A stretch of 62,934 nucleotides of DNA, the filler included, from Choristocarpus tenellus KU-1152 (Eukaryota; Protista; Phaeophyceae): assembly GCA_964200185.2 (NCBI GenBank). It is 10 parts of 10 records of this genome, joined end to end, with 100 filler letters (N's around TTAATTAATTAA, not from the genome) between each part and the next. Parts side by side here need not be neighbours in the genome. Positions count along the whole stretch, not along the records: positions 24,004 to 34,582 come from CAXNAD020002848.1; 9 more parts are not named here. The stretch is one strand, 5' to 3'. Positions 23,904 through 34,682 of this stretch are shown piece after piece. Position 1 is the stretch's first letter, and each line of letters starts with the position of its first letter. Under the pieces are notes generated by a model that saw nothing but the letters and a program-made list of their open reading frames with translations, was not told the DNA's origin and did no database searches. The translations under genes and the position numbers were made by a program.

Positions 23904-24024
23904 NNNNNNNNNNNNNNNNNNNNNNNNNNNNNNNNNNNNNNNNNNNNTTAATTAATTAANNNNNNNNNNNNNNNNNNNNNNNNNNNNNNNNNNNNNNNNN
24001 NNNCCGGTGTTCGTTTTTGACCCC

Positions 24025-24075
24025 GACTCAAAGTATCTAGGGGGGGTGGCGGCTGTTCATTTGGGGTCAATTTTT
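24025..24075 (+). mobile_element. MITE family B terminus
   Basis: GACTCAAAGTATCTAGGGGGGGTGGCGGCTGTTCATTTGGGG. Other termini at 52745-52763, 58898-58916 and 62863-62934. Confidence 0.8.
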
Positions 24076-24172
24076 CCTTTTTAGCTTTACAGGTTATTGC
24101 TGTATGCCATACACTGTTACACTGATTGAGGATATTTTTCAGGAATGCAGGATTCCAGTGGAGTTTTTTTTT

Positions 24173-24480
24173 TTAGATTGGACTGTGGAATCTCTTCATC
24201 AGACCAATCCCACAAATAGTGGATATCTCTTCATCATTCAGAGATGTCAAACACCACAGATTCTCTTCAATATCACATGTTGACATTCTGAGGATCTCTT
24301 TCTCACGAGATTCTCCCCACTCTGGAATACTCTGCAGTTCTCTCCATTTCTTGCACTTGTCAAACCTTAACCTTGCCCTCTCAGTTACGGTTCGTCTTGG
24401 CCTGTCTTGCCTGGTGATCCTCTTCACCACCCTTGCCTGAGGGAACCATTCCGCCACAGAATAATATGATTTACAATCTA
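24173..24480 (-). pseudogene. Repeated-element fragment encoding a degenerate CW-type zinc finger
   Basis: RLRFDKCKKWREL..STCDIEENLWC; two single-base reversions restore WLRCDKCKKWR. 24400-24480 is homologous to 21167-21240 on another contig. Confidence 0.45.
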
Positions 24481-25472
24481 CAATCTTAAATCCCAACACC
24501 TGCCTTAAAGTGGACATGCTGGCCCATGCTGAATAAGCCCAACTTTAAAGTAAAGGCATGACATGTTGGCTTCACACAGCCTAGCCTTAAAGTGGGCCAC
24601 CAGCTGTTGTACGGTCAACAGAGATTAAGGGATCAGGCTCAATGAGAAACCGAAAAGATTGAGATGAATAGGAATTTGAGGGTTGTGCAGAACTAGTTGT
24701 GAGATTACCCACAGAATACGTTGAGCAGTGCCCCGGTCTCTGATCAAGTCAAGATATTGAGATACCACTGCACCACTTGGGCAATCAGGTGGACAGATGA
24801 ATGCTCCACGGGTACAGTGGTATCTCAACATCTCGATAACTCCCACAACACAGACTTAGACCAAGGGTATGTTGTCTCACATAAGATTGACTGTAACAAT
24901 AACCTAGCAGCACAGAAAATAAAAATTGGAATAGATCAGTTCATCTTTGCAGAACGTACGGGAGGGCGAAGCACCTCAGAAAACAAAGAAAATAGTATGA
25001 CTGGTGTCCCCCCCTCCACCTCCACACCATTTGAGATATCTCACTAAAATGAACTAAACAACATGACAGCCATTTACAAGGTTACGTTTGGTATTCTGCA
25101 CTTGGTTCCCACCACACCCAATACTTTAAATACACACAGACACGTTTTGGAAAACAGACTTGATCCTGACAACATATGTAGGAATGACACTAGAGGAAAA
25201 AAACACAGCACAGTTATGGCATTATGTATGTAGACTTCAGGTAGGCATTCCGCATGCAGCTCCAGTATATGCAAGAGAGTAAGAGAGATTAGGGGGATAT
25301 AGTACAATTAATTACAATATGCAGAATCTGTCTCGTGAGTCAGATCAAAGCTCATCAGTCAAGGTCCAAGTACCCCTGTACACACACCTGCCAGAACTTG
25401 AAACCTTTAGACATGTGTGCAAGCCGCATATTGGCCACACCCCTTTTTCCTAGAGGGAGAAAGAATAGAGCA

Positions 25473-27344
25473 CTAGAAACCACCTTGTTCTCCATTTGAG
25501 TCCAACAACCCGTATGATGCTAAATCTATATCCTGGGACTCACACAGTTCCTTGAATCGCATAAAATCTTCACGAGAATACTCAGCAGAATTTTTACCTT
25601 TGAAGTCAGTTCGACTCCCTTTTGATACCACATCCGGATCCCGGGACTGCTCTAATGCCTTCAAATGCCTGAACCTCTCAAAGGATTTGAACTCATTCAA
25701 CACCTTCTCTGCAGTAGTAATATCATTGAAATAACCAAGGTGAATTTGCTTTCCCCCTTTCATCCCAAAAGCACTCCAAGCTTTCTGCGATGAAGCCCAA
25801 TTCACTGAAGATACCCCAGATTTATTCCGTGGGTTGAGCTTCTGCTCTGGTTTTGGTATCCTGTAAGTCTCCTGGATGTTGATGAGGGGTACAATAAAGT
25901 TTCCATTATCACAAGTGTGTTATAGTAATCACATTCAGGCACAACATTCCACAAATGATGTACCGTAAGGAATCAGGGTATAGGGGAGTGTTCAGTGACC
26001 ATACCCCTCGGTACGTACCTCACAGCTTACCACCTCCAGGTTGACCAGATGATTGTCCATTTTATTGCCATTGATGTGCCTCACCCTCCAATAGCTGGAT
26101 GCGTACTCAGGGACCCACCTCCCCCAGGTTCTGTATACTACCTTGTGCATCATTATTGACTTATTTTTTCCACTGGTTGGGTCCACCCACTGAGCTTGCG
26201 CAAAACCTTTATTAGTCATTGCAGGAATCAGGTACTTCTTCCTTTCACCTCCATTTCGGTCTGAGTATCGTATTGCCCCCTCCATTGCAACCTGGCGATA
26301 TCAAGTAACAGTACATGGCAATGAGCAGGTGGAAACCACTTCGCCATGGAGTTTGAACAGAGAACAGGTGAGTCAGAAGATTACACCGCATCTTGGCTCA
26401 TGCGAATCACGTGCGATTTTTTTCTGGTACCTCGCGACTTTCCTCATTGTATGTCAGAAAAGTACCACCAACCTCTATCTCCGGGTGGTCTGGGTGCACC
26501 CTCCAACTGAAGCTATCAACGACATCTGTGAGATCGGGACCAGCGCGACGTGTCCGACGCGGCGTACCCCTTGAACTACGGCGCGCTGTTTTGGTGTAGC
26601 TGAGGTTGCTGAGTCTATTATCTGACAAATCTCCATTGTTGTTCACAATTTGCCACGTCCATTTCCCCTGTTGAGAGTAAGACCAAGAAAAGGTTCAACT
26701 AGGGTTATTTATAGTAGCAGGTTCTCAAAAGACAGATACAGTAGGGATTTGAATTCTTCTTCTCAACCACGGGTACGGGCACAGGACCACATCACCTTGC
26801 CGTCTTCGTTTGGGAGTTGGCCATCTGGGTACGGCACCTCGAACGTAGCCATCATAATTCTTTGTGTGCTCACACGGGTGTGCCTACCCTTGAAGGACAA
26901 TATATACCGGGCGCTGTCACCAGGCTGGCAACTATGCGGTTTGAGCTTCCTCCGAATAACTAAATCGTCTTTCTTGCGGGTCCTAACCGAATACACATTG
27001 CCCCTATTGTCCGCCCGGTATAAGCCCAATGGAGCATCATCAGGCATCACCCACACAGGAACGTCACGCTCTTTTAGGCCAACCACATCCGGAGCCTCTA
27101 TTGGTATGTCTTCTGCATCATTGTGGGTATGACCTAAGGTGGCATCAACAGCCTCGACAGAATCGTGCTTCTCTCCGGTCTCTTCCCCATTCGCAAGACA
27201 CAATCTTGTTCGTGGGCTTGATGTCCGTGGACTATTATTGACTTCAATTACACCTCCTGACTTGATGCAAGCGGGGATGTATGCCACACAGGGCGCTAGT
27301 GGGCACCCCAGGAAAGAAAGGACGGCAACCAGGTCGCGCCTCAT
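25473..27344 (-). CDS. Signal/transit-peptide-bearing NUMOD4-HNH-NUMOD4-HNH-AP2 protein (~467 aa), homing-endonuclease derived
   Basis: Exons 27344-26796, 26667-26473, 26291-26031, 25871-25473, all phase-0 GT-AG, joining with no stops. NUMOD4-like WVMPDDAPLGLYRADNRGNVYS and WRVHPDHPEIEVAMEGAIRY. HNH_3-like IVNNNGDLSDNRLSNL and VRHINGNKMDNHLVNLE. AP2-like RNKSGVSSVNW..KAWSA..GKQIHLGYFNDITTAEK. Confidence 0.88.
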
Positions 27345-27639
27345 CCCCAGGGCCCAGGGTTATTCTCTTTTTGAGCTCACACTTTCTTGCCAAAGGAAAT
27401 CAAGTAAGTCCAAAAATATGACGACAGTGGTATTGTTGCTGTTATAGTTGTGTAATCGAAATTTTTGTAAAGATCAAATCGACCCAAACATTTTCGATAG
27501 TCTAGTCTCGATACTTTTGAACTACTTCTGAACTCAAGTGAAAATTATGTGAAGGGAACAAACATACAATAGTAGTAGTTGTGCACTACTGGAAAGAATG
27601 ATCCGGTTCGATTCGAATTTCCGCTTACAACGAAATCAG

Positions 27640-28360
27640 TGAAGAAATTGATGTGTTTTAACAATAATGTGTTATTCCATCATGGGTGACCTCAAACAGT
27701 GTGTGTGGAGAATTCGAAGGAAGGTCACTACTCAAATCTTGGAGGACGACTAACTGTGGCTTAGCAAAGCGGTAAGGTCTGGGAGGTCCACGAAACTCCC
27801 TGAGGCCAAGGAAGTGGTCATCAAATTCGTCACCAATCTTTACTCGATCACAGTGCAAAAAAAGGTAATGCAAACATAAAATAAAAACGGTGGTGCGAAG
27901 AGTTCTCATATCTTTAGATAGCTGAACAAGATGGAAGCCGAGAAGAAGCATCCGTGGATCAAACCGAGGATTAGAGACTGCCACAAGGCCATATTTACTT
28001 AGGGTTGGATTTGCGTTCGGTCACATCGACAGTTCGTACCTAACTTTCAATACTCAAAATAATTGTTTGTTAGGAAGGTTTGGACCCTTTTAAATTCCAA
28101 GTCATCTTTCTTACTACCCTACACAATGACTTTTATTTTATTATGTGCACAATAATATATGGAATATTGGTATCTCCCCTTTACACACACAAAGTGACAC
28201 CAAAATTAAGCAAAGAAGGCTCTTCCTGTATTGTACAAAATGACATCTTTTTGCACCTTCTTGGGATCCTTAATATACAACCCTGCCGACTTCTCAATTG
28301 TGTTTGACTCAAAGGGCATGTTCAACGTGGTTCACATCGATGAAACCTGGTACTACCTGA
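27640..28360 (+). mobile_element. Mariner (plant-type DD39D-like) transposase remnant
   Basis: Degraded peptides RSGRSTKL, HPWIKPRIRDCHK and MFNVVHIDETWYYL (VHIDEKWF-type first-D motif). Truncated immediately after that motif. Confidence 0.55.
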
Positions 28361-28398
28361 TTGGTGGCGGATTTGTCAAAAAAGTTTTTATGTTCTGC

Positions 28399-29905
28399 GT
28401 GTACTTACATAAGAGAGGTCAATATAAGAGAAAAGGGGATATAGGGTAAATTACCTTGTCACAACTTTTCAGGCTATAAGAGAGGTTTCGGCGTCTTCGT
28501 TCCAATTCTTTCTTATATCGAGCAAACTTCCATTTTTTTTCACTAAGATGATACCAGTAGCTTTGCCCTCTTTAGCAGTTCCGTTTTTTTTCACTGGATG
28601 GCCGCAAAAGATATACAATATATATATCAAATTAAAGCTTATGACAAAACCTTTTGAAGGTTTGTATGGAGGAATGTAGAAACGTCGGTGAAGCGGATGT
28701 CCTGATAAAGTAATGGAAAAAATGCGGGGGAATATTTCGGGCGCAATTTTGAAGGTCAGGACTTCAAAACTTGCAAAAATGAAGTGGTTGGCTGAACTCC
28801 TTGCAGAAAACTGGTTTGGAGGGCACGGGCATCACGAATATGCTTTTATGTTTTTAATCCGATGTCCACATCAAAAGTTATGACGGGACAACCCCAGAGG
28901 TCGAAGCTACTGGTACCACTAGATGAAGGGGTTTCACAAACAGCCATGTCTAAAGTTAAACAAAATTCAACAAAATAAGCCAGAAAGCAGTCACACCATG
29001 TTGTCTCTCAGTATTGCACACTGCACATCAAGTTTAGATAACTACCTTGTACAGATATAAAGATACCCTACGCAGCGGGACCCAACTGCAACATACAGGG
29101 GTATTATTTCTGGTCCACCACACTATACATGCCGTAAGTGTCGCGTTTGTAGCGGCTATCTTCATGTCATTTGCGGCGTTGTGGATCCTTTTAGCGCCAG
29201 CGAAATGAAATTTGTGTGCAAATTGTGCATGAGCCTCACCAAGCGCAAGGCTTCGAGTCCTCCAGCGGGTGACAACACCGCGTCGAAGCGCCACAATAAC
29301 AAGAAAGGTCAACATCCTCCCTGCCCCCGCGTCCAAGCGGAGCTGACCTCAAAGTTTGGCAATACTACTTGCACCTCGGACAAGTTCACCTCTGACACTG
29401 ACAACTCTGTTGAGGACACCGATGAGCTGATGCACCTCATGCAGCTTGAGTGTCGGCACGAGGAGTGGCAATATTGATAAGGATCTCTCCGATGCTCTTG
29501 ACGCTCTACACCTCAAAACTCGCCGGAAAAACGTCTCGGGCTTCCATCGGCGCAGCGAGAGCGCGGATCAGTGCGGAAGACAACGATGAAGTGGCCAATG
29601 TAATACTAGAGGACATGGAAGACCAGCTTTTCGACGAATCCTTGTACCAGTCAGACAATGAAGCTCCGGTGACGAGGTTGACGATGAGTTTATGGGAGGA
29701 GGCAGTGCATTGGGGACCGTGAGGAAAGGAGCAGCCTCTTCAGTGTTGTCGATTCCTCCACCTTCGCACTCTCAAGTGGCTGACGAGTTTGCAAGCTTAG
29801 AAACAACTGCCGAAGAGTGCAGGATGAAGGATGTTTCGTAATATCTCCAGAAAGTAGAGCTGGCTTGGCTCAGCGCAATTGGGGCAAAGACAGGTTGTGA
29901 AACCT
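28399..29905 (+). mobile_element. pogo-like deletion derivative (copy 1) with N-terminal PHD-like finger
   Basis: 5' end with repeated TATAAGAG motifs. Peptide PPHYTCRKCRVCSGYLHVICG..KFVCKLC and acidic tail EDNDEVANVILEDMEDQL. Homologous to 58917-59845 on the minus strand. Confidence 0.7.
28548..28919. mobile_element. Nested non-autonomous TIR element (~372 bp) inside pogo copy 1
   Basis: 24-bp imperfect TIRs, ATGATACCAGTAGCTTTGCCCTCT vs GTGGTACCAGTAGCTTCGACCTCT (20/24). Absent at the equivalent site of copy 2 (~59700). Confidence 0.7.
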
Positions 29906-32623
29906 AGGTGGTATGTTTTGATTTTGGTGATGTGGTAAGAGAGGCATTCATCCATATACTATAAGAAAATAAATAAATATATATATGGTACAATAGTCGG
30001 TAGTTGTAGAAACATTCGTTACCTTCCAATATGATTTGAGTGGTAGTGAAGGCAATCCTGCTCCTGATTGGGTTCAGTGCTTTGGGATATCTTGTGAGGA
30101 TTAGCCCTCCTCTTGTGGTAACATATTCCACACACTCATACACATCATTTGAAGAGCAGTGTTATTTTCTCATTTATTTCCTGCCTTGTTATTGTACACT
30201 GGCAAGAATCGGAGGACTAACGGTGGAACGATGCTGAGTATCTACCACTAAAACACTTTACCTGCTACTTGGTGTAGCCCTGTTCCCCTCACTGGCACAC
30301 AGTTTGTTGTCACTACTGAGGATTTGAGGCCTCAGTAGATCAAAGGAGAAGATACTCTGTTCTTACCACTTGTTTAGAATGACTTCCAACTTACATGTAT
30401 GTACAGAAAGTTAGCAGGGAGGTGAAAGTGTGTGGGGCGCTCTTAAAGTGTCAATGCTGGGGAGAAGTTCTTAGGGTAACAAGAGTCATGCTACTACTAA
30501 CACAAGTTTGTGGTGCAGCGTCTGCAGCGACTGGGACAGCCCCTGAAAACGTATCTGTTCATATCATGACATCACAAAATGTATTCTCCTGAGGGCTTAT
30601 TAGTCACTACAATAGAGAGCATTACAGGCCCCGACACAAACCATCCTGGGGGATGACATACCAATCAAAGTACTACTATTGTACTACAGTGTACCTTGTG
30701 TAGTAGTACTTCTTTTGGTTGTAAGTATTCATTTGGTGGTCTCACGCATATTCGAGAAAACCATCCTCTCCTCTAAGTGTAGTGAGAATCCCTGCCATAT
30801 TGATCAGTGTCCCTTGATGAACTGTACTCCAAAACACTGAACTTGCTCCAGAAACAAAATAGCCACTCCATCGTTTTAAGAACATTTCGCAACTTAGTTT
30901 GCACGAAGCACATTTTTTTCAAATGCACACAACAAAATCAAGACAATAACCAAGAAAGCATTGTTCGCTTCTTATGTTGCATCTCTTCGATTGCAATAAA
31001 TATGAAAGCGTCTGATTCCTGACTCAGCTAGTATCTCTGCATACATAGAAGAAATTGGGACACTACAGCACTCCAGGACAACACAAGTCTAAATAAACAA
31101 AAGGAATGCCACTTCTAATATTTTGCTACTTTAATAATAGTCTGCCAGGCACTGAAGGCTTGGTTTGATATGAAGGGCTACAAAAAACTCAGAATACAAT
31201 AGATGTTGGTGTAACCAAGCCTGGAGCAAAAGAGCTTGTGCTTGTAGGAGGTGCACCACTCCCCCTACCAGAGGGAGTTGCAGGCATTGATGGATTAAAT
31301 TGCCTTGTTGGTGGATTCAGGTTGAAGAAAGGAGGGGCAAGAGGATGGAGCCGGGCCGTAACAAGTCGTGGAGGTGACCCTGGCTGTAGAACAGGAAAGG
31401 GCAGCAAAGTAATCAAGATGGGTATTAGGGCGGTGAGAATGTGTTGATAGGCTGCAGGTAGGTACATGATAAACATTACATTCGGCATAAAGTGGGGAAA
31501 AGATGTGGGATCAGGAAAATAATGAGATCAGTATCTCATTACTTCAACAGTGGTAATTCCCAACAGTAGTCAGGTTTAATTATGCCTCATTCAAACAGGT
31601 ACCCAATGGATGACTGCTGCTTGGATGACAACCTCTCTCATGATGTTCTAATGTAGCTGAGGAATTGGATACTGCAGGTCACCTCCCCTGAGGAAAATTG
31701 TCCTGGTACATGGAAACCAACTAGGTACGCGCTCTCATCTCATCTTTTCCCTCAGATTCCTGTCAATGCATTGTCAAGAAGTGATTGGAGAGGAACATAC
31801 AAGATGTCCCGTACGCAGAGTTGATGGTAGAGGGGTAAGCAACATAATTGAGACATGCGAGACATACAGAGTGAAGGCACACTGGCTTACCACAGAATCA
31901 AATACAGCAGAAGATTGTGCCTCCAGTGCACATTTCACTTCTGCTGCTGATGGATCTTTCATTCGCACAAATCGGAGGGTCCTTTTCCAGTCAATGAAGG
32001 CCATGGCACAAGCACGCGTGGAAGGGAAAGAGCGGAGATATGAATAACAATAGAGGTATGCCATTCAGGGTCTTACATCCTTTGCTCCAATATAGGCGGG
32101 TTTTTCCTATTGGTGAGGGAGGCGATATACAATGAGGACATTTGCCTTCCCTCAAGGATCACTGCATATACCTGAAAGGAGTGCAATAGAGGTGAAGGAG
32201 CCTTCAAATGCCTACATCAAATATGTGTTGGGGAGGGAATGAACTGGAAACATGTCAGTGAGAAGCATATAATTTACATCTCACATGAAACAAATCTACG
32301 CCTTCTAAAGGCTGGAAATAGATCAGTAGCAGTTCATTTTACAAAGTACAATGTAGCATTCTTCTGCTCGTCTACGCACAAGTTGTGACTAAATTTTCAG
32401 GGGACACAACACCTAGTTGTGCTGGTTAGAGAAAAAAACTCATTCATGGATCAAGTGCTTTCAACACGCACCTGGGGGGTGAGGCGTTGCTGCAACAGGC
32501 AATGGCTGAATCAAAACTGAAATTGTTGCCGCACAAAGCCATGCCGTTGACAGACAACAGGAGATCCCCTGGCTGGACTGCAACCTTGTAATTAAGACAA
32601 ACAGAAATGAGAGAGGGTGAAAA

Positions 32624-32903
32624 GGGTCAAAGTACCTGGGGGTGGTGGTGGTGGCTGTCCATTTGGAGCTAATTTTTTTATGTCGCGATTTTGGGTGATT
32701 TGGTTCCATACGTTGGATGGATAATGAAAGTGCACTTTTCCTGGTATTGGTCCAAATGGACACTTTGATGAAGACCCCCCCCCCCCCCCCCGGGGCTTTG
32801 GGAGAAAATTTTTTAGAAAACAAAGAAGAAGGGGCAAAAAAANNNNNNNNNNAAAATAGTACATTTTTTGAAGACCCCCCCCCCCCCCCAGGTACTTTGT
32901 GTC
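32624..32903 (+). mobile_element. MITE family B, full-length copy (right end duplicated around a 10-N gap)
   Basis: GGGTCAAAGTACCTGGGGG ... CCCCCAGGTACTTTGTGTC. TSD AAAA at 32620-32623 and 32904-32907. Confidence 0.8.
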
Positions 32904-34682
32904 AAAATTTTATCAGAGATCAAGATGAATGGGCAAAAAAAATGGAGGGAGCAAAGCATCAAGGCACAACCAAGATAACGTTTGGACAAAGAAAAGTGCG
33001 ATGTTGTTAAGATTTGCGATCCTTTTCTCCGAAGACCAACTCACTACAATTCTGAAGCCAATATCCTGTCAATACAGGTCGAACTATCAGGTCGAACTAT
33101 CAGAAAGAGTCTGTCCCATCGGACACGCAATCAAGCCTAACCCTAACCCTAAACCTATTAACCTCACATTACACATTCTTGCACATTACACAACAATATC
33201 CATCACTGGCCAGCCACTCCCAAAGTGCAGGACGATTACAAGTGAAGTGAGGCACTAAAGTGAACGATAGACTCAAGGCTATGGAGAAGAAAAAACGACA
33301 GAAAGTCACAAAGAGAACAGGTAAGAAAATGCTGCAGACTCCAGATCAAACACAAGTTTAAGACCTTCAAGAAAAATATTGGCAATGGACTTTTACCTGT
33401 AAGTACTGGTGCTGGGCCTCGAGAACCTCAAGGCATCCAAATGCTGGTTGGCCTGGCGGGGCTCCCGCTGGTGATTGCGTGTACAGTGAGCGGAGGTTGA
33501 GCCCAAGGGCCCCGACCCTGGGAAATATCACCTTCCAGTCAAGGGATACTAGTGAAGTAAGAACTACATTTATTCCAAGGTTTCAAGAGGGTGAGGGACC
33601 TTGCAGGTTGAATGTTTCCTACTGGGTAATATTGATGTGTACAATATTTCATTGGTGTACATATTGCCTTCCATAGTACGTCCTCTGTAGCTCTAGCCTT
33701 AATGTTATTTATGAATAGGAATAAGATCACTCCCATTGCATCAATCAAAATAACAATTAAAAACAGTGCAACAGACTGTGATGGGAAAAGCCAGCCCATC
33801 CAACAAAACGTAATATTATGTCTTGATCATCGAGGCCAGCACTTCTTGTTATAACATACCATATGGAAGGCTTTAGTCACAAAAAAAAGGTACTGCTTTG
33901 AAGGACTATGTAGAGCACCACTATTAGAGTACATCAAGAAGTATGGGACACTTATTGAGTTCAAAACATACCCAACCAATTCTATCATTCAGCCTCTACT
34001 ACACTGCAGCGATTCAATCTCTTCAATTCAATTAAATATCTTATCTATCTCATTTTTTAATTTTGTAGTGATAGCAGCATTTCCTATAAATTCCGTTTTA
34101 TCAATGACTTTAGAACTTAGATCAATGTTCTCCCTTTTAAATTTAGTTACCTCACAAGCTCTTTTTAGGATTATCACTAATTTATCATGGGTAAATGTTT
34201 TTTCTAAATAGTCATAAGCGAATCATAATCAACCAAAACAGAAAACTGAGGGGTAATTCTTGATTATTTATTTTTCACAAGAAACACTCGCTGCTGTGCG
34301 CTCTGCTTGTGCACCTTGGCATTTTGTGTGCCTCTACATGTGTGCTGCATGCAAGTTTCAATTGTAATCAACCGCCTTGAAAATTTTCAAGTCGAGTTAA
34401 TTTGTGCCCCAAAATGCCCTCGGTTCGCAACACTGCATATTGTAGTAGAGTGTGTGTTTATGTGCTGCAATGAGCAGACAACACACAACTTGCAAACCTT
34501 CTCAACCAAGTGAGGGATATTCATTGGTTCTAGCATTACAAAAGAGCAGGGCATCAAATACCCCCCCCCCCTGCCCCACACCNNNNNNNNNNNNNNNNNN
34601 NNNNNNNNNNNNNNNNNNNNNNNNNNTTAATTAATTAANNNNNNNNNNNNNNNNNNNNNNNNNNNNNNNNNNNNNNNNNNNN

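Follow-up and report, generated by a model that had tools for sequence, protein, structure and literature searches.

A gene of the brown alga Choristocarpus tenellus KU-1152, at 25473..27344 on the minus strand of the DNA that we analysed (the window, 62,934 nucleotides made up of parts of ten records of assembly GCA_964200185.2 joined end to end), is well supported as a member of a domesticated, probably non-catalytic HNH-AP2 DNA-binding family. C. tenellus is a stramenopile (Phaeophyceae, Discosporangiales) and an early-diverging brown alga, and the gene is the only one annotated on contig CAXNAD020002848.1, the entire 10,579 bp of which form positions 24004-34582 of the window in reverse orientation. 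Its product, CAM9401994.1, is a 471-residue "unnamed protein product", referred to here as P0001. Our proposal is that C. tenellus has at least three old nuclear paralogues, descended from HNH_3-AP2 endonucleases and now dead as nucleases, which bind DNA without cutting it, most likely in the complex plastid. We put this full proposal forward tentatively, with a confidence a little short of even.

P0001 has, in order, a hydrophobic leader, a Ser/Arg stretch, an acidic linker, two HNH_3 modules like that of I-HmuI and an AP2-like domain. The whole protein scores 31.1 bits against Pfam HNH_3 (PF13392, cut-off 24.8) over two stretches, and the individual exons give weak Pfam matches only. PHROG profiles for HNH endonucleases match all four exons in colinear order, in exon 1 over residues 107-176, and the best match is that of phrog_959 to exon 3 (E 3.9e-10). 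A preliminary description of this DNA had proposed two tandem modules, each of NUMOD4 plus HNH_3. The two HNH_3 stretches bear out the duplication, but Pfam reports no NUMOD4 match at E<=5 in any paralogue. The region concerned is spanned by the PHROG alignments and by the structural alignment to I-HmuI, and has the pattern W-x-x-h-P...E-V-x-x-x-G-x-h-R/Y-S, and the NUMOD4 assignment would come solely from the I-HmuI-like fold.

The AlphaFold (AF2) model of P0001 has a mean predicted local distance difference test score (pLDDT) of 57.7. Residues 1-106 are unstructured, and pLDDT is about 65-77 for module 1 (107-211), 70-88 for module 2 (236-344) and about 80 for the AP2 region (356-415). The top match of the model in PDB by Foldseek is I-HmuI (1u3e; E 3.2e-5, probability 1.00, 116 columns, root-mean-square deviation 3.0). 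In the AP2 region, encoded at 25644..25823 on the minus strand, the model has three strands (362-365, 370-377 and 380-387) followed by a helix (390-414), and Foldseek matches it to the AP2 domains of TEM1 (7et4) and PfAP2 (3igm) with probability 0.80-0.96 and E of about 0.1. The C-terminal AP2 domain of the preliminary description is also consistent with the PHROG matches and with an alignment in which module 2 and the AP2 stretch share 46% identity with P0019 over 72 residues; P0019 is a protein of 175 residues with precomputed HNH_3 and AP2 assignments. By Pfam AP2 (PF00847, cut-off 33.3 bits) the domain is below threshold in P0001 itself (9.1 bits) and in its paralogue P0002 (12 bits) but above it in the paralogue P0003 (36.7 bits), and when the family profile was searched against the sequences in PDB the one match was PfAP2, at E of about 1.

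Some of the residues expected of a working nuclease are missing from each of the two modules. We fixed the positions of I-HmuI D74, H75, N87 and N96 by aligning a bona fide relative, P0012, and transferred them through the family alignment; D74 and N96 we take to be the metal ligands and H75 the general base. In module 1 the general-base position is N192 (codon at 26641..26643, minus strand), with Y in P0003 and N in the copy on contig L003, from which the P0002 record comes, and R213 is at the N96 position. In module 2 the general-base His is retained as H320 (codon at 26076..26078, minus strand) and is present in both paralogues too. The residue before it, R319, is at the D74 position, where the three copies have R, R and V, and the N96 position is T341 (codon at 25866..25868, minus strand), with A in P0003 and I in P0002. 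Asn is kept at the N96 position in 7 of the 8 aligned relatives from outside Choristocarpus, phage-type and metagenomic proteins among them. Both modules still have the structural Asn of the N-L motif (N204 and N332). Judged from this alignment both HNH centres are degenerate, module 1 being without the general-base His and module 2 without both metal-ligand positions. A role in binding rather than cutting therefore fits, and we infer that the P0001 family probably binds DNA without cutting it.

The nearest relatives of P0001 are in the same genome. Searches were run with single exons and later with the database record P0001. With exon 3 as query, a full HMMER search of 1.84 billion representative proteins gave 14 matches at E<=1e-3, and the only strong ones besides P0001 itself were P0002 and P0003, both from C. 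tenellus. P0003 (CAM9500909.1, L002:2095-5492) has 545 residues in six exons and is 30% identical to P0001; it has two extra introns, a longer acidic spacer in its N-terminal part and, at the C-terminus, a second AP2 domain, which scores above the Pfam cut-off. An LSM gene in divergent orientation lies 300 bp away from the P0003 gene. P0002 (CAN0006782.1) is a fragment of 204 residues on contig L003, 55% identical to P0001. Its annotated start is inside intron 2 (L003:540-605), and a good exon 2 is found upstream at L003:155-349, bounded by AG and GT and 60% identical to residues 177-249 of P0001, with exon 1 lost at the contig edge. The 204-residue record is thus a truncated model, and exons 2-4 of the L003 copy are intact.

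Outside C. tenellus the similarity is much weaker. The other exon 3 matches are NUMOD4/HNH_3 proteins from metagenomes or bacteria, none of them better than E 3e-6, and one of the proteins found, P0004, is a four-module NUMOD4/HNH_3 protein on a contig that resembles a giant virus. When P0001 and the family profile were used as queries in word-based searches, the only additions were two small HNH_3(-AP2) proteins and one Tara protein; the exon 1 open reading frame, searched by words as well, gave no matches. There were no tblastn matches of exon 3 in 50,697 phage records and no relatives in a JGI metagenome scan, and IMG/VR scans gave one trivial match of 18 residues to the HNH motif (L001) and then none. 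We saw no recognisable orthologue in Ectocarpus, diatoms or the other public proteomes searched, in libraries that may not hold all of the Phaeoexplorer proteomes.

The gene has four exons and three phase-0 introns bounded by GT and AG, as had been described, and read-through of each intron meets in-frame stops. From reading of the minus strand, with P0001 mapped back to the DNA, exon 1 is at 26796..27344 (residues 1-183: leader, Ser/Arg stretch, acidic linker and the N-terminal sheet of module 1), exon 2 at 26473..26667 (residues 184-248: the degenerate HNH motif of module 1, a basic linker and the start of module 2), exon 3 at 26019..26291 (residues 249-339: the body of module 2 with the HNH_3 motif) and exon 4 at 25476..25871 (residues 340-471: the end of module 2, the AP2-like domain and a C-terminal tail), with the stop codon at 25473..25475, all on the minus strand. 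Intron 1 (26668..26795, 128 nt) interrupts module 1 just ahead of the HNH motif, intron 2 (26292..26472) is of 181 nt and intron 3 (25872..26018) of 147 nt. PHROG profile positions run on across the splice sites (phrog_959 16-75 in exon 1 and 78-102 in exon 2, phrog_99 148-194 in exon 3 and 206-256 in exon 4), so introns 1 and 3 are independently supported.

Two donors and the length given in the preliminary description did not stand. Exon 2 ends after ...PEIE, with its donor at 26472, where the end had been put 14 codons later, and exon 3 ends after ...VVSCE, with its donor at 26018, where the end had been put 4 codons earlier. We prefer these annotated donors because the paralogues match both junctions: the junction ...PEIE|V... 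is identical in P0003, which continues as ...PEIE|VSREGAVRFS, and in the L003 copy, and at the end of exon 3 P0002 reads ...RSVE|EIYR. A model of 481 residues (exon 2 to 26431, exon 3 to 26031) and the earlier one of about 467 were dropped, after the comparison with the paralogues, in favour of the annotated 471. The reading frame stays open through the 42 nt past the annotated exon 2 donor (26431-26472), at the end of which there is a second GT. In the P0001 gene this GT could serve as an alternative 5' splice site, with 14 residues added in the NUMOD4-like strand, but this is not so in the L003 copy, in which read-through meets a stop nine codons past PEIE.

That these are host genes of some age is indicated by comparison of the copies. 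P0001 and P0003, although only 30% identical, share all three intron positions and phases, the site of intron 3 being two codons off in P0003 and the same in the L003 copy. Synonymous sites are saturated between the C. tenellus copies, with a proportion of differences (pS) of 0.54-0.93, and the proportion at nonsynonymous sites (pN) is well below this at 0.24-0.52. Alignment at the DNA level finds exon segments only, the introns and flanks being unrelated save for a dispersed poly-C repeat. The study from which the assembly comes reports no viral regions in Discosporangiales genomes. Shared introns, pN below pS, similarity confined to exons and the lack of viral regions together point to an old, low-copy family under purifying selection, and the nuclear, intron-acquired and domesticated gene of the preliminary description is upheld. 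So is its statement that terminal inverted repeats and target-site duplications are not evident, as a search around the gene found no flanking direct or inverted repeats.

It is against these data that a still-selfish element has to be judged, either an active homing or nicking endonuclease, or cargo of a transposon or of an integrated giant virus of the phaeovirus-like kind. The nearest relatives that are not the family itself are viral HNH/NUMOD4 proteins, including multi-module ones on a probable giant-virus contig, the structural look-alikes in the Atlas are viral, and module 2 retains its general-base His. But the diverged paralogues have three spliceosomal introns in common, metal ligands are lost in all copies, and only three copies were found, 30-55% identical, with unrelated flanks and without terminal repeats. 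There are also no viral neighbours. A viral insert in particular is ruled out by the three introns, the LSM neighbour of P0003, the lack of relatives in IMG/VR and the lack of viral regions in Discosporangiales. We regard the selfish explanation as largely refuted and highly improbable.

The destination of the protein is less clear than its origin. The elements described at the N-terminus are all present on reading of exon 1 and from its hydropathy: a leader ending PCVA|YIP, a Ser/Arg-rich stretch and an acidic linker. The signal-peptide-like leader (residues 1-21, 27282..27344, minus strand) is M-R-R-D followed by a hydrophobic core of 17 residues, with C-V-A at -3 to -1 and then Y22. The leaders of P0001 and P0003 share 10 of 22 residues (M1, R2, V6, V8, L12, C14, L16, C19, A21 and Y22), and the next 80-160 residues, the remainder of an N-terminal part of 100-180, cannot be aligned. 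After the leader comes a transit-peptide-like stretch (about residues 22-50, 27195..27281, minus strand) that starts Y-I-P and is rich in Ser, Pro, Arg and Thr with a net positive charge; the basic, Ser-rich character after Y22 is clearest in P0003.

The preliminary description took this for a plastid leader of the ASAFAP type. The ASAFind 2.0 rule accepts F, W, Y or L at +1 and reserves high confidence for 20-residue scores above 2. The Y22 of both P0001 and P0003 is thus an allowed residue, and the leader is conserved, but the transit scores do not reach the cut-off, being about 1.54 for P0001 and 1.25 for P0003. These are hand sums over the published matrix at A21|Y22 and may contain small arithmetic errors. 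For rough reference a random sequence without F scores about 0.7 and the maximum without F is about 3.3, and the P at +3, which is the strongest non-F position of the matrix, raises the score of P0001. With scores below 2 the best ASAFind call would be "plastid, low confidence", and this conditional on a positive SignalP result. Plastid localisation of the family is therefore plausible but unproven, and if the complex plastid is nonetheless the likeliest destination it is because the mature protein would begin with an aromatic residue, with a stretch of hydroxylated and basic character following it.

The same dead HNH-AP2 protein could have some other endomembrane fate, such as retention in the endoplasmic reticulum (ER) or periplastidial compartment, secretion, or anchoring by an uncleaved signal. 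The hydrophobic N-terminus is conserved, the transit score is under the cut-off in both paralogues, and Y is rare at +1 among reference plastid proteins. Set against this, it is hard to see what a protein of DNA-binding architecture would act on in the ER lumen, in the ochrophyte periplastidial compartment or outside the cell, periplastidial proteins characteristically are without an aromatic +1 residue, and in both paralogues Y at +1 is followed by a basic, Ser-rich stretch. We think such a fate unlikely, though it carries some weight.

A nuclear AP2-type transcription factor or chromatin binder would require the leader to be non-functional, or to be skipped by a start at M100, before module 1. 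To our knowledge all characterised eukaryotic AP2 descendants (plant AP2/ERF and ApiAP2) are nuclear, and between its two modules P0001 carries a patch of basic residues, R-R-x-x-R...R-R-T-R-R. But this patch is absent in P0003 and weak in the L003 copy, and so is no conserved nuclear localisation signal, and 10 of 22 leader residues are shared by P0001 and P0003, more than the roughly 30% for the protein as a whole, which indicates that the leader is translated and constrained. A nuclear role is on this evidence distinctly unlikely.

Several points count against the proposal of a dead endonuclease descendant in the plastid. The transit scores have been given, and the matrix from which they come applies to diatoms and not to brown algae; of the +1 residues in its reference set of diatom proteins Y accounts for about 2%, as estimated from the column-6 weights. 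The AF2 model of P0001 is of moderate confidence only, as its mean pLDDT indicates. The splice junctions as given rest on evidence-driven annotation and on the colinearity of the paralogues. Module 2 keeps, besides its His, a conserved Glu at the position directly preceding that of the lost Asn, and may have residual nicking activity. Finally, no orthologue was seen beyond one fragmentary assembly, and for this reason a contaminating eukaryote is a formal, if improbable, alternative.

The last point leads to the explanation by artefact, in which the contig would be from a contaminant eukaryote in a fragmentary short-read assembly, or the gene would be a silent relic with a wrong gene model. 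It is true that the contigs of the family are only 3-10 kb long and that no other species shows an orthologue. But intact, selected copies are on three separate contigs, the family contigs share a dispersed repeat family, the P0003 copy is beside a normal eukaryotic LSM gene, and a leader with Y at +1 suits an ochrophyte host. The annotation of the source study, moreover, was made with Gmove, and its gene models were built from aligned proteins and transcripts only. An artefact is in our view improbable.

We can then suggest a history for the proposed plastid DNA-binding family. The ancestor would have been a NUMOD4/HNH_3/AP2 homing endonuclease, I-HmuI-like and of the kind found in phages or giant viruses. 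Tandem duplication of the nuclease module, gain of spliceosomal introns and decay of both catalytic centres would have given a sequence-specific DNA binder, which may contact a long site through three units, the two dead HNH modules and the AP2 domain. The protein would enter the ER co-translationally by means of its leader, be cleaved before Y22, and pass into the complex plastid, there to bind the AT-rich plastid genome. The C. tenellus plastome is of 120,428 bp with 26.5% GC, and neither it nor the mitochondrial genome has introns, so a role as maturase or splicing factor can be set aside as unlikely.

The rest of the contig offers little. Rfam and tRNA scans of CAXNAD020002848.1 found nothing, nor did Pfam on ten open reading frames flanking the gene. 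A GC-richer island at 29000-29800 (0.48-0.50 compared with about 0.42 around it) has on the plus strand two overlapping open reading frames, 29181-29477 and 29450-29722, which are acidic and Ser-rich, with no Pfam match and no annotation, and could be an unannotated exon pair or noise. About 640 bp downstream of the stop codon there is a 39-nt inverted repeat (24749-24836) with 79% complementarity and a loop of 10 nt, and with mirrored open reading frames on both strands, which could be a hairpin or a remnant like a miniature inverted-repeat transposable element. The dispersed repeat, with poly-C tracts of 15-16 nt, is at 24024-24076, 32624-32941 and 34557-34577 in the window and at L003:41-94 and L003:2831-2998. 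On CAXNAD020002848.1 it takes the form of two tandem units of about 100 bp broken by N gaps. It recurs at the ends of this contig and of L003 with 76-92% identity, where it probably breaks the assembly, and these copies are not terminal repeats of the gene.

The idea that AP2 transcription factors come from HNH-AP2 homing endonucleases has so far rested on end states, the phage enzymes on one side and the plant and apicomplexan factors, without nuclease, on the other. The C. tenellus family is an intermediate in a eukaryotic nucleus, with apparently inactivated nuclease modules kept, introns gained and paralogues under selection, and as it shows this intermediate state the order of events becomes testable. 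If the leader is truly plastid-directing, algae with complex plastids would have in this family a nuclear-encoded plastid DNA-binding factor of a new class. If it is not, we still have a lineage-specific DNA-binding family that is unnamed in public annotation. The most far-reaching form of the proposal, that these are the first AP2-type DNA-binding proteins imported into a plastid, dead tandem HNH-AP2 proteins recruited by an early-diverging brown alga to bind or organise its plastid genome, and a living intermediate, with HNH modules attached and introns gained, between homing endonucleases and the AP2 regulators at which plants and apicomplexans have arrived, we regard as doubtful.

With regard to known systems, I-HmuI, the HNH nicking homing endonuclease encoded in an intron of phage SPO1 (1U3E), is the closest in fold, both having an N-terminal sheet followed by a beta-beta-alpha-metal motif. 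In P0001 the module is tandemly duplicated, module 1 is without the general base and module 2 without the equivalents of D74 and N96, and the gene has spliceosomal introns and an N-terminal leader and lies outside any intron or phage. The C-terminal DNA-binding part is AP2 in P0001 and helix-turn-helix in I-HmuI.

The small HNH_3-AP2 endonucleases of phages, cyanobacteria and other bacteria share with P0001 an HNH motif followed directly by the AP2 sheet. P0019 and P0018 are similar, and the PHROG families of this type match exon 4. These enzymes are the proposed source of eukaryotic AP2 domains. They are single-module proteins of 170-230 residues, intronless and with an intact H...N...N centre, whereas P0001 is the product of a gene in a eukaryotic nucleus, has 471 residues and a leader, and contains two modules, with degenerate catalytic centres. 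The giant-virus NUMOD4/HNH_3 endonucleases resemble it in having tandem NUMOD4-HNH_3 units in one polypeptide; the contig of P0004 carries intronless helicase, SNF2 and glutamine-synthetase genes, and the top structural look-alike of the P0001 model is a Nucleocytoviricota cluster. However the multi-module viral proteins have retained the catalytic residues, end in NUMOD1 and not in AP2 and are without introns or leader, and the similarity is weak (E 3e-6 at best).

Plant AP2/ERF and ApiAP2 proteins are likewise products of eukaryotic nuclear genes that act by binding and not by cutting DNA, and their AP2 domain is thought to derive from AP2 domains associated with the endonucleases or integrases of mobile elements. 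They differ in having shed HNH wholly, in being nuclear proteins without signal peptides and in forming large families. The C. tenellus family, in contrast, has kept the dead HNH modules, has three known members in one species and has a leader of secretory or plastid type. Outside plants and Apicomplexa, the linkage of AP2 domains to homing endonucleases or integrases is well known, and AP2 proteins have been recorded in stramenopiles. We found no literature linking HNH-AP2 proteins to brown algae or diatoms, and the main text of the Phaeoexplorer paper makes no mention of HNH or AP2.

A parallel of another kind is provided by the nMAT maturases of plants and the LAGLIDADG protein OTP51, which are nuclear-encoded, organelle-targeted descendants of organellar intron proteins and act in RNA splicing. 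The logic would be the same, in that a selfish protein of nuclease type loses cutting, moves to or stays in the nucleus, gains a targeting leader and comes to serve an organelle, but with a role in RNA splicing and in another fold family. The "undescribed system" of the preliminary description was an overstatement: the C. tenellus family is a variant of a known domestication theme and not a new kind of system.

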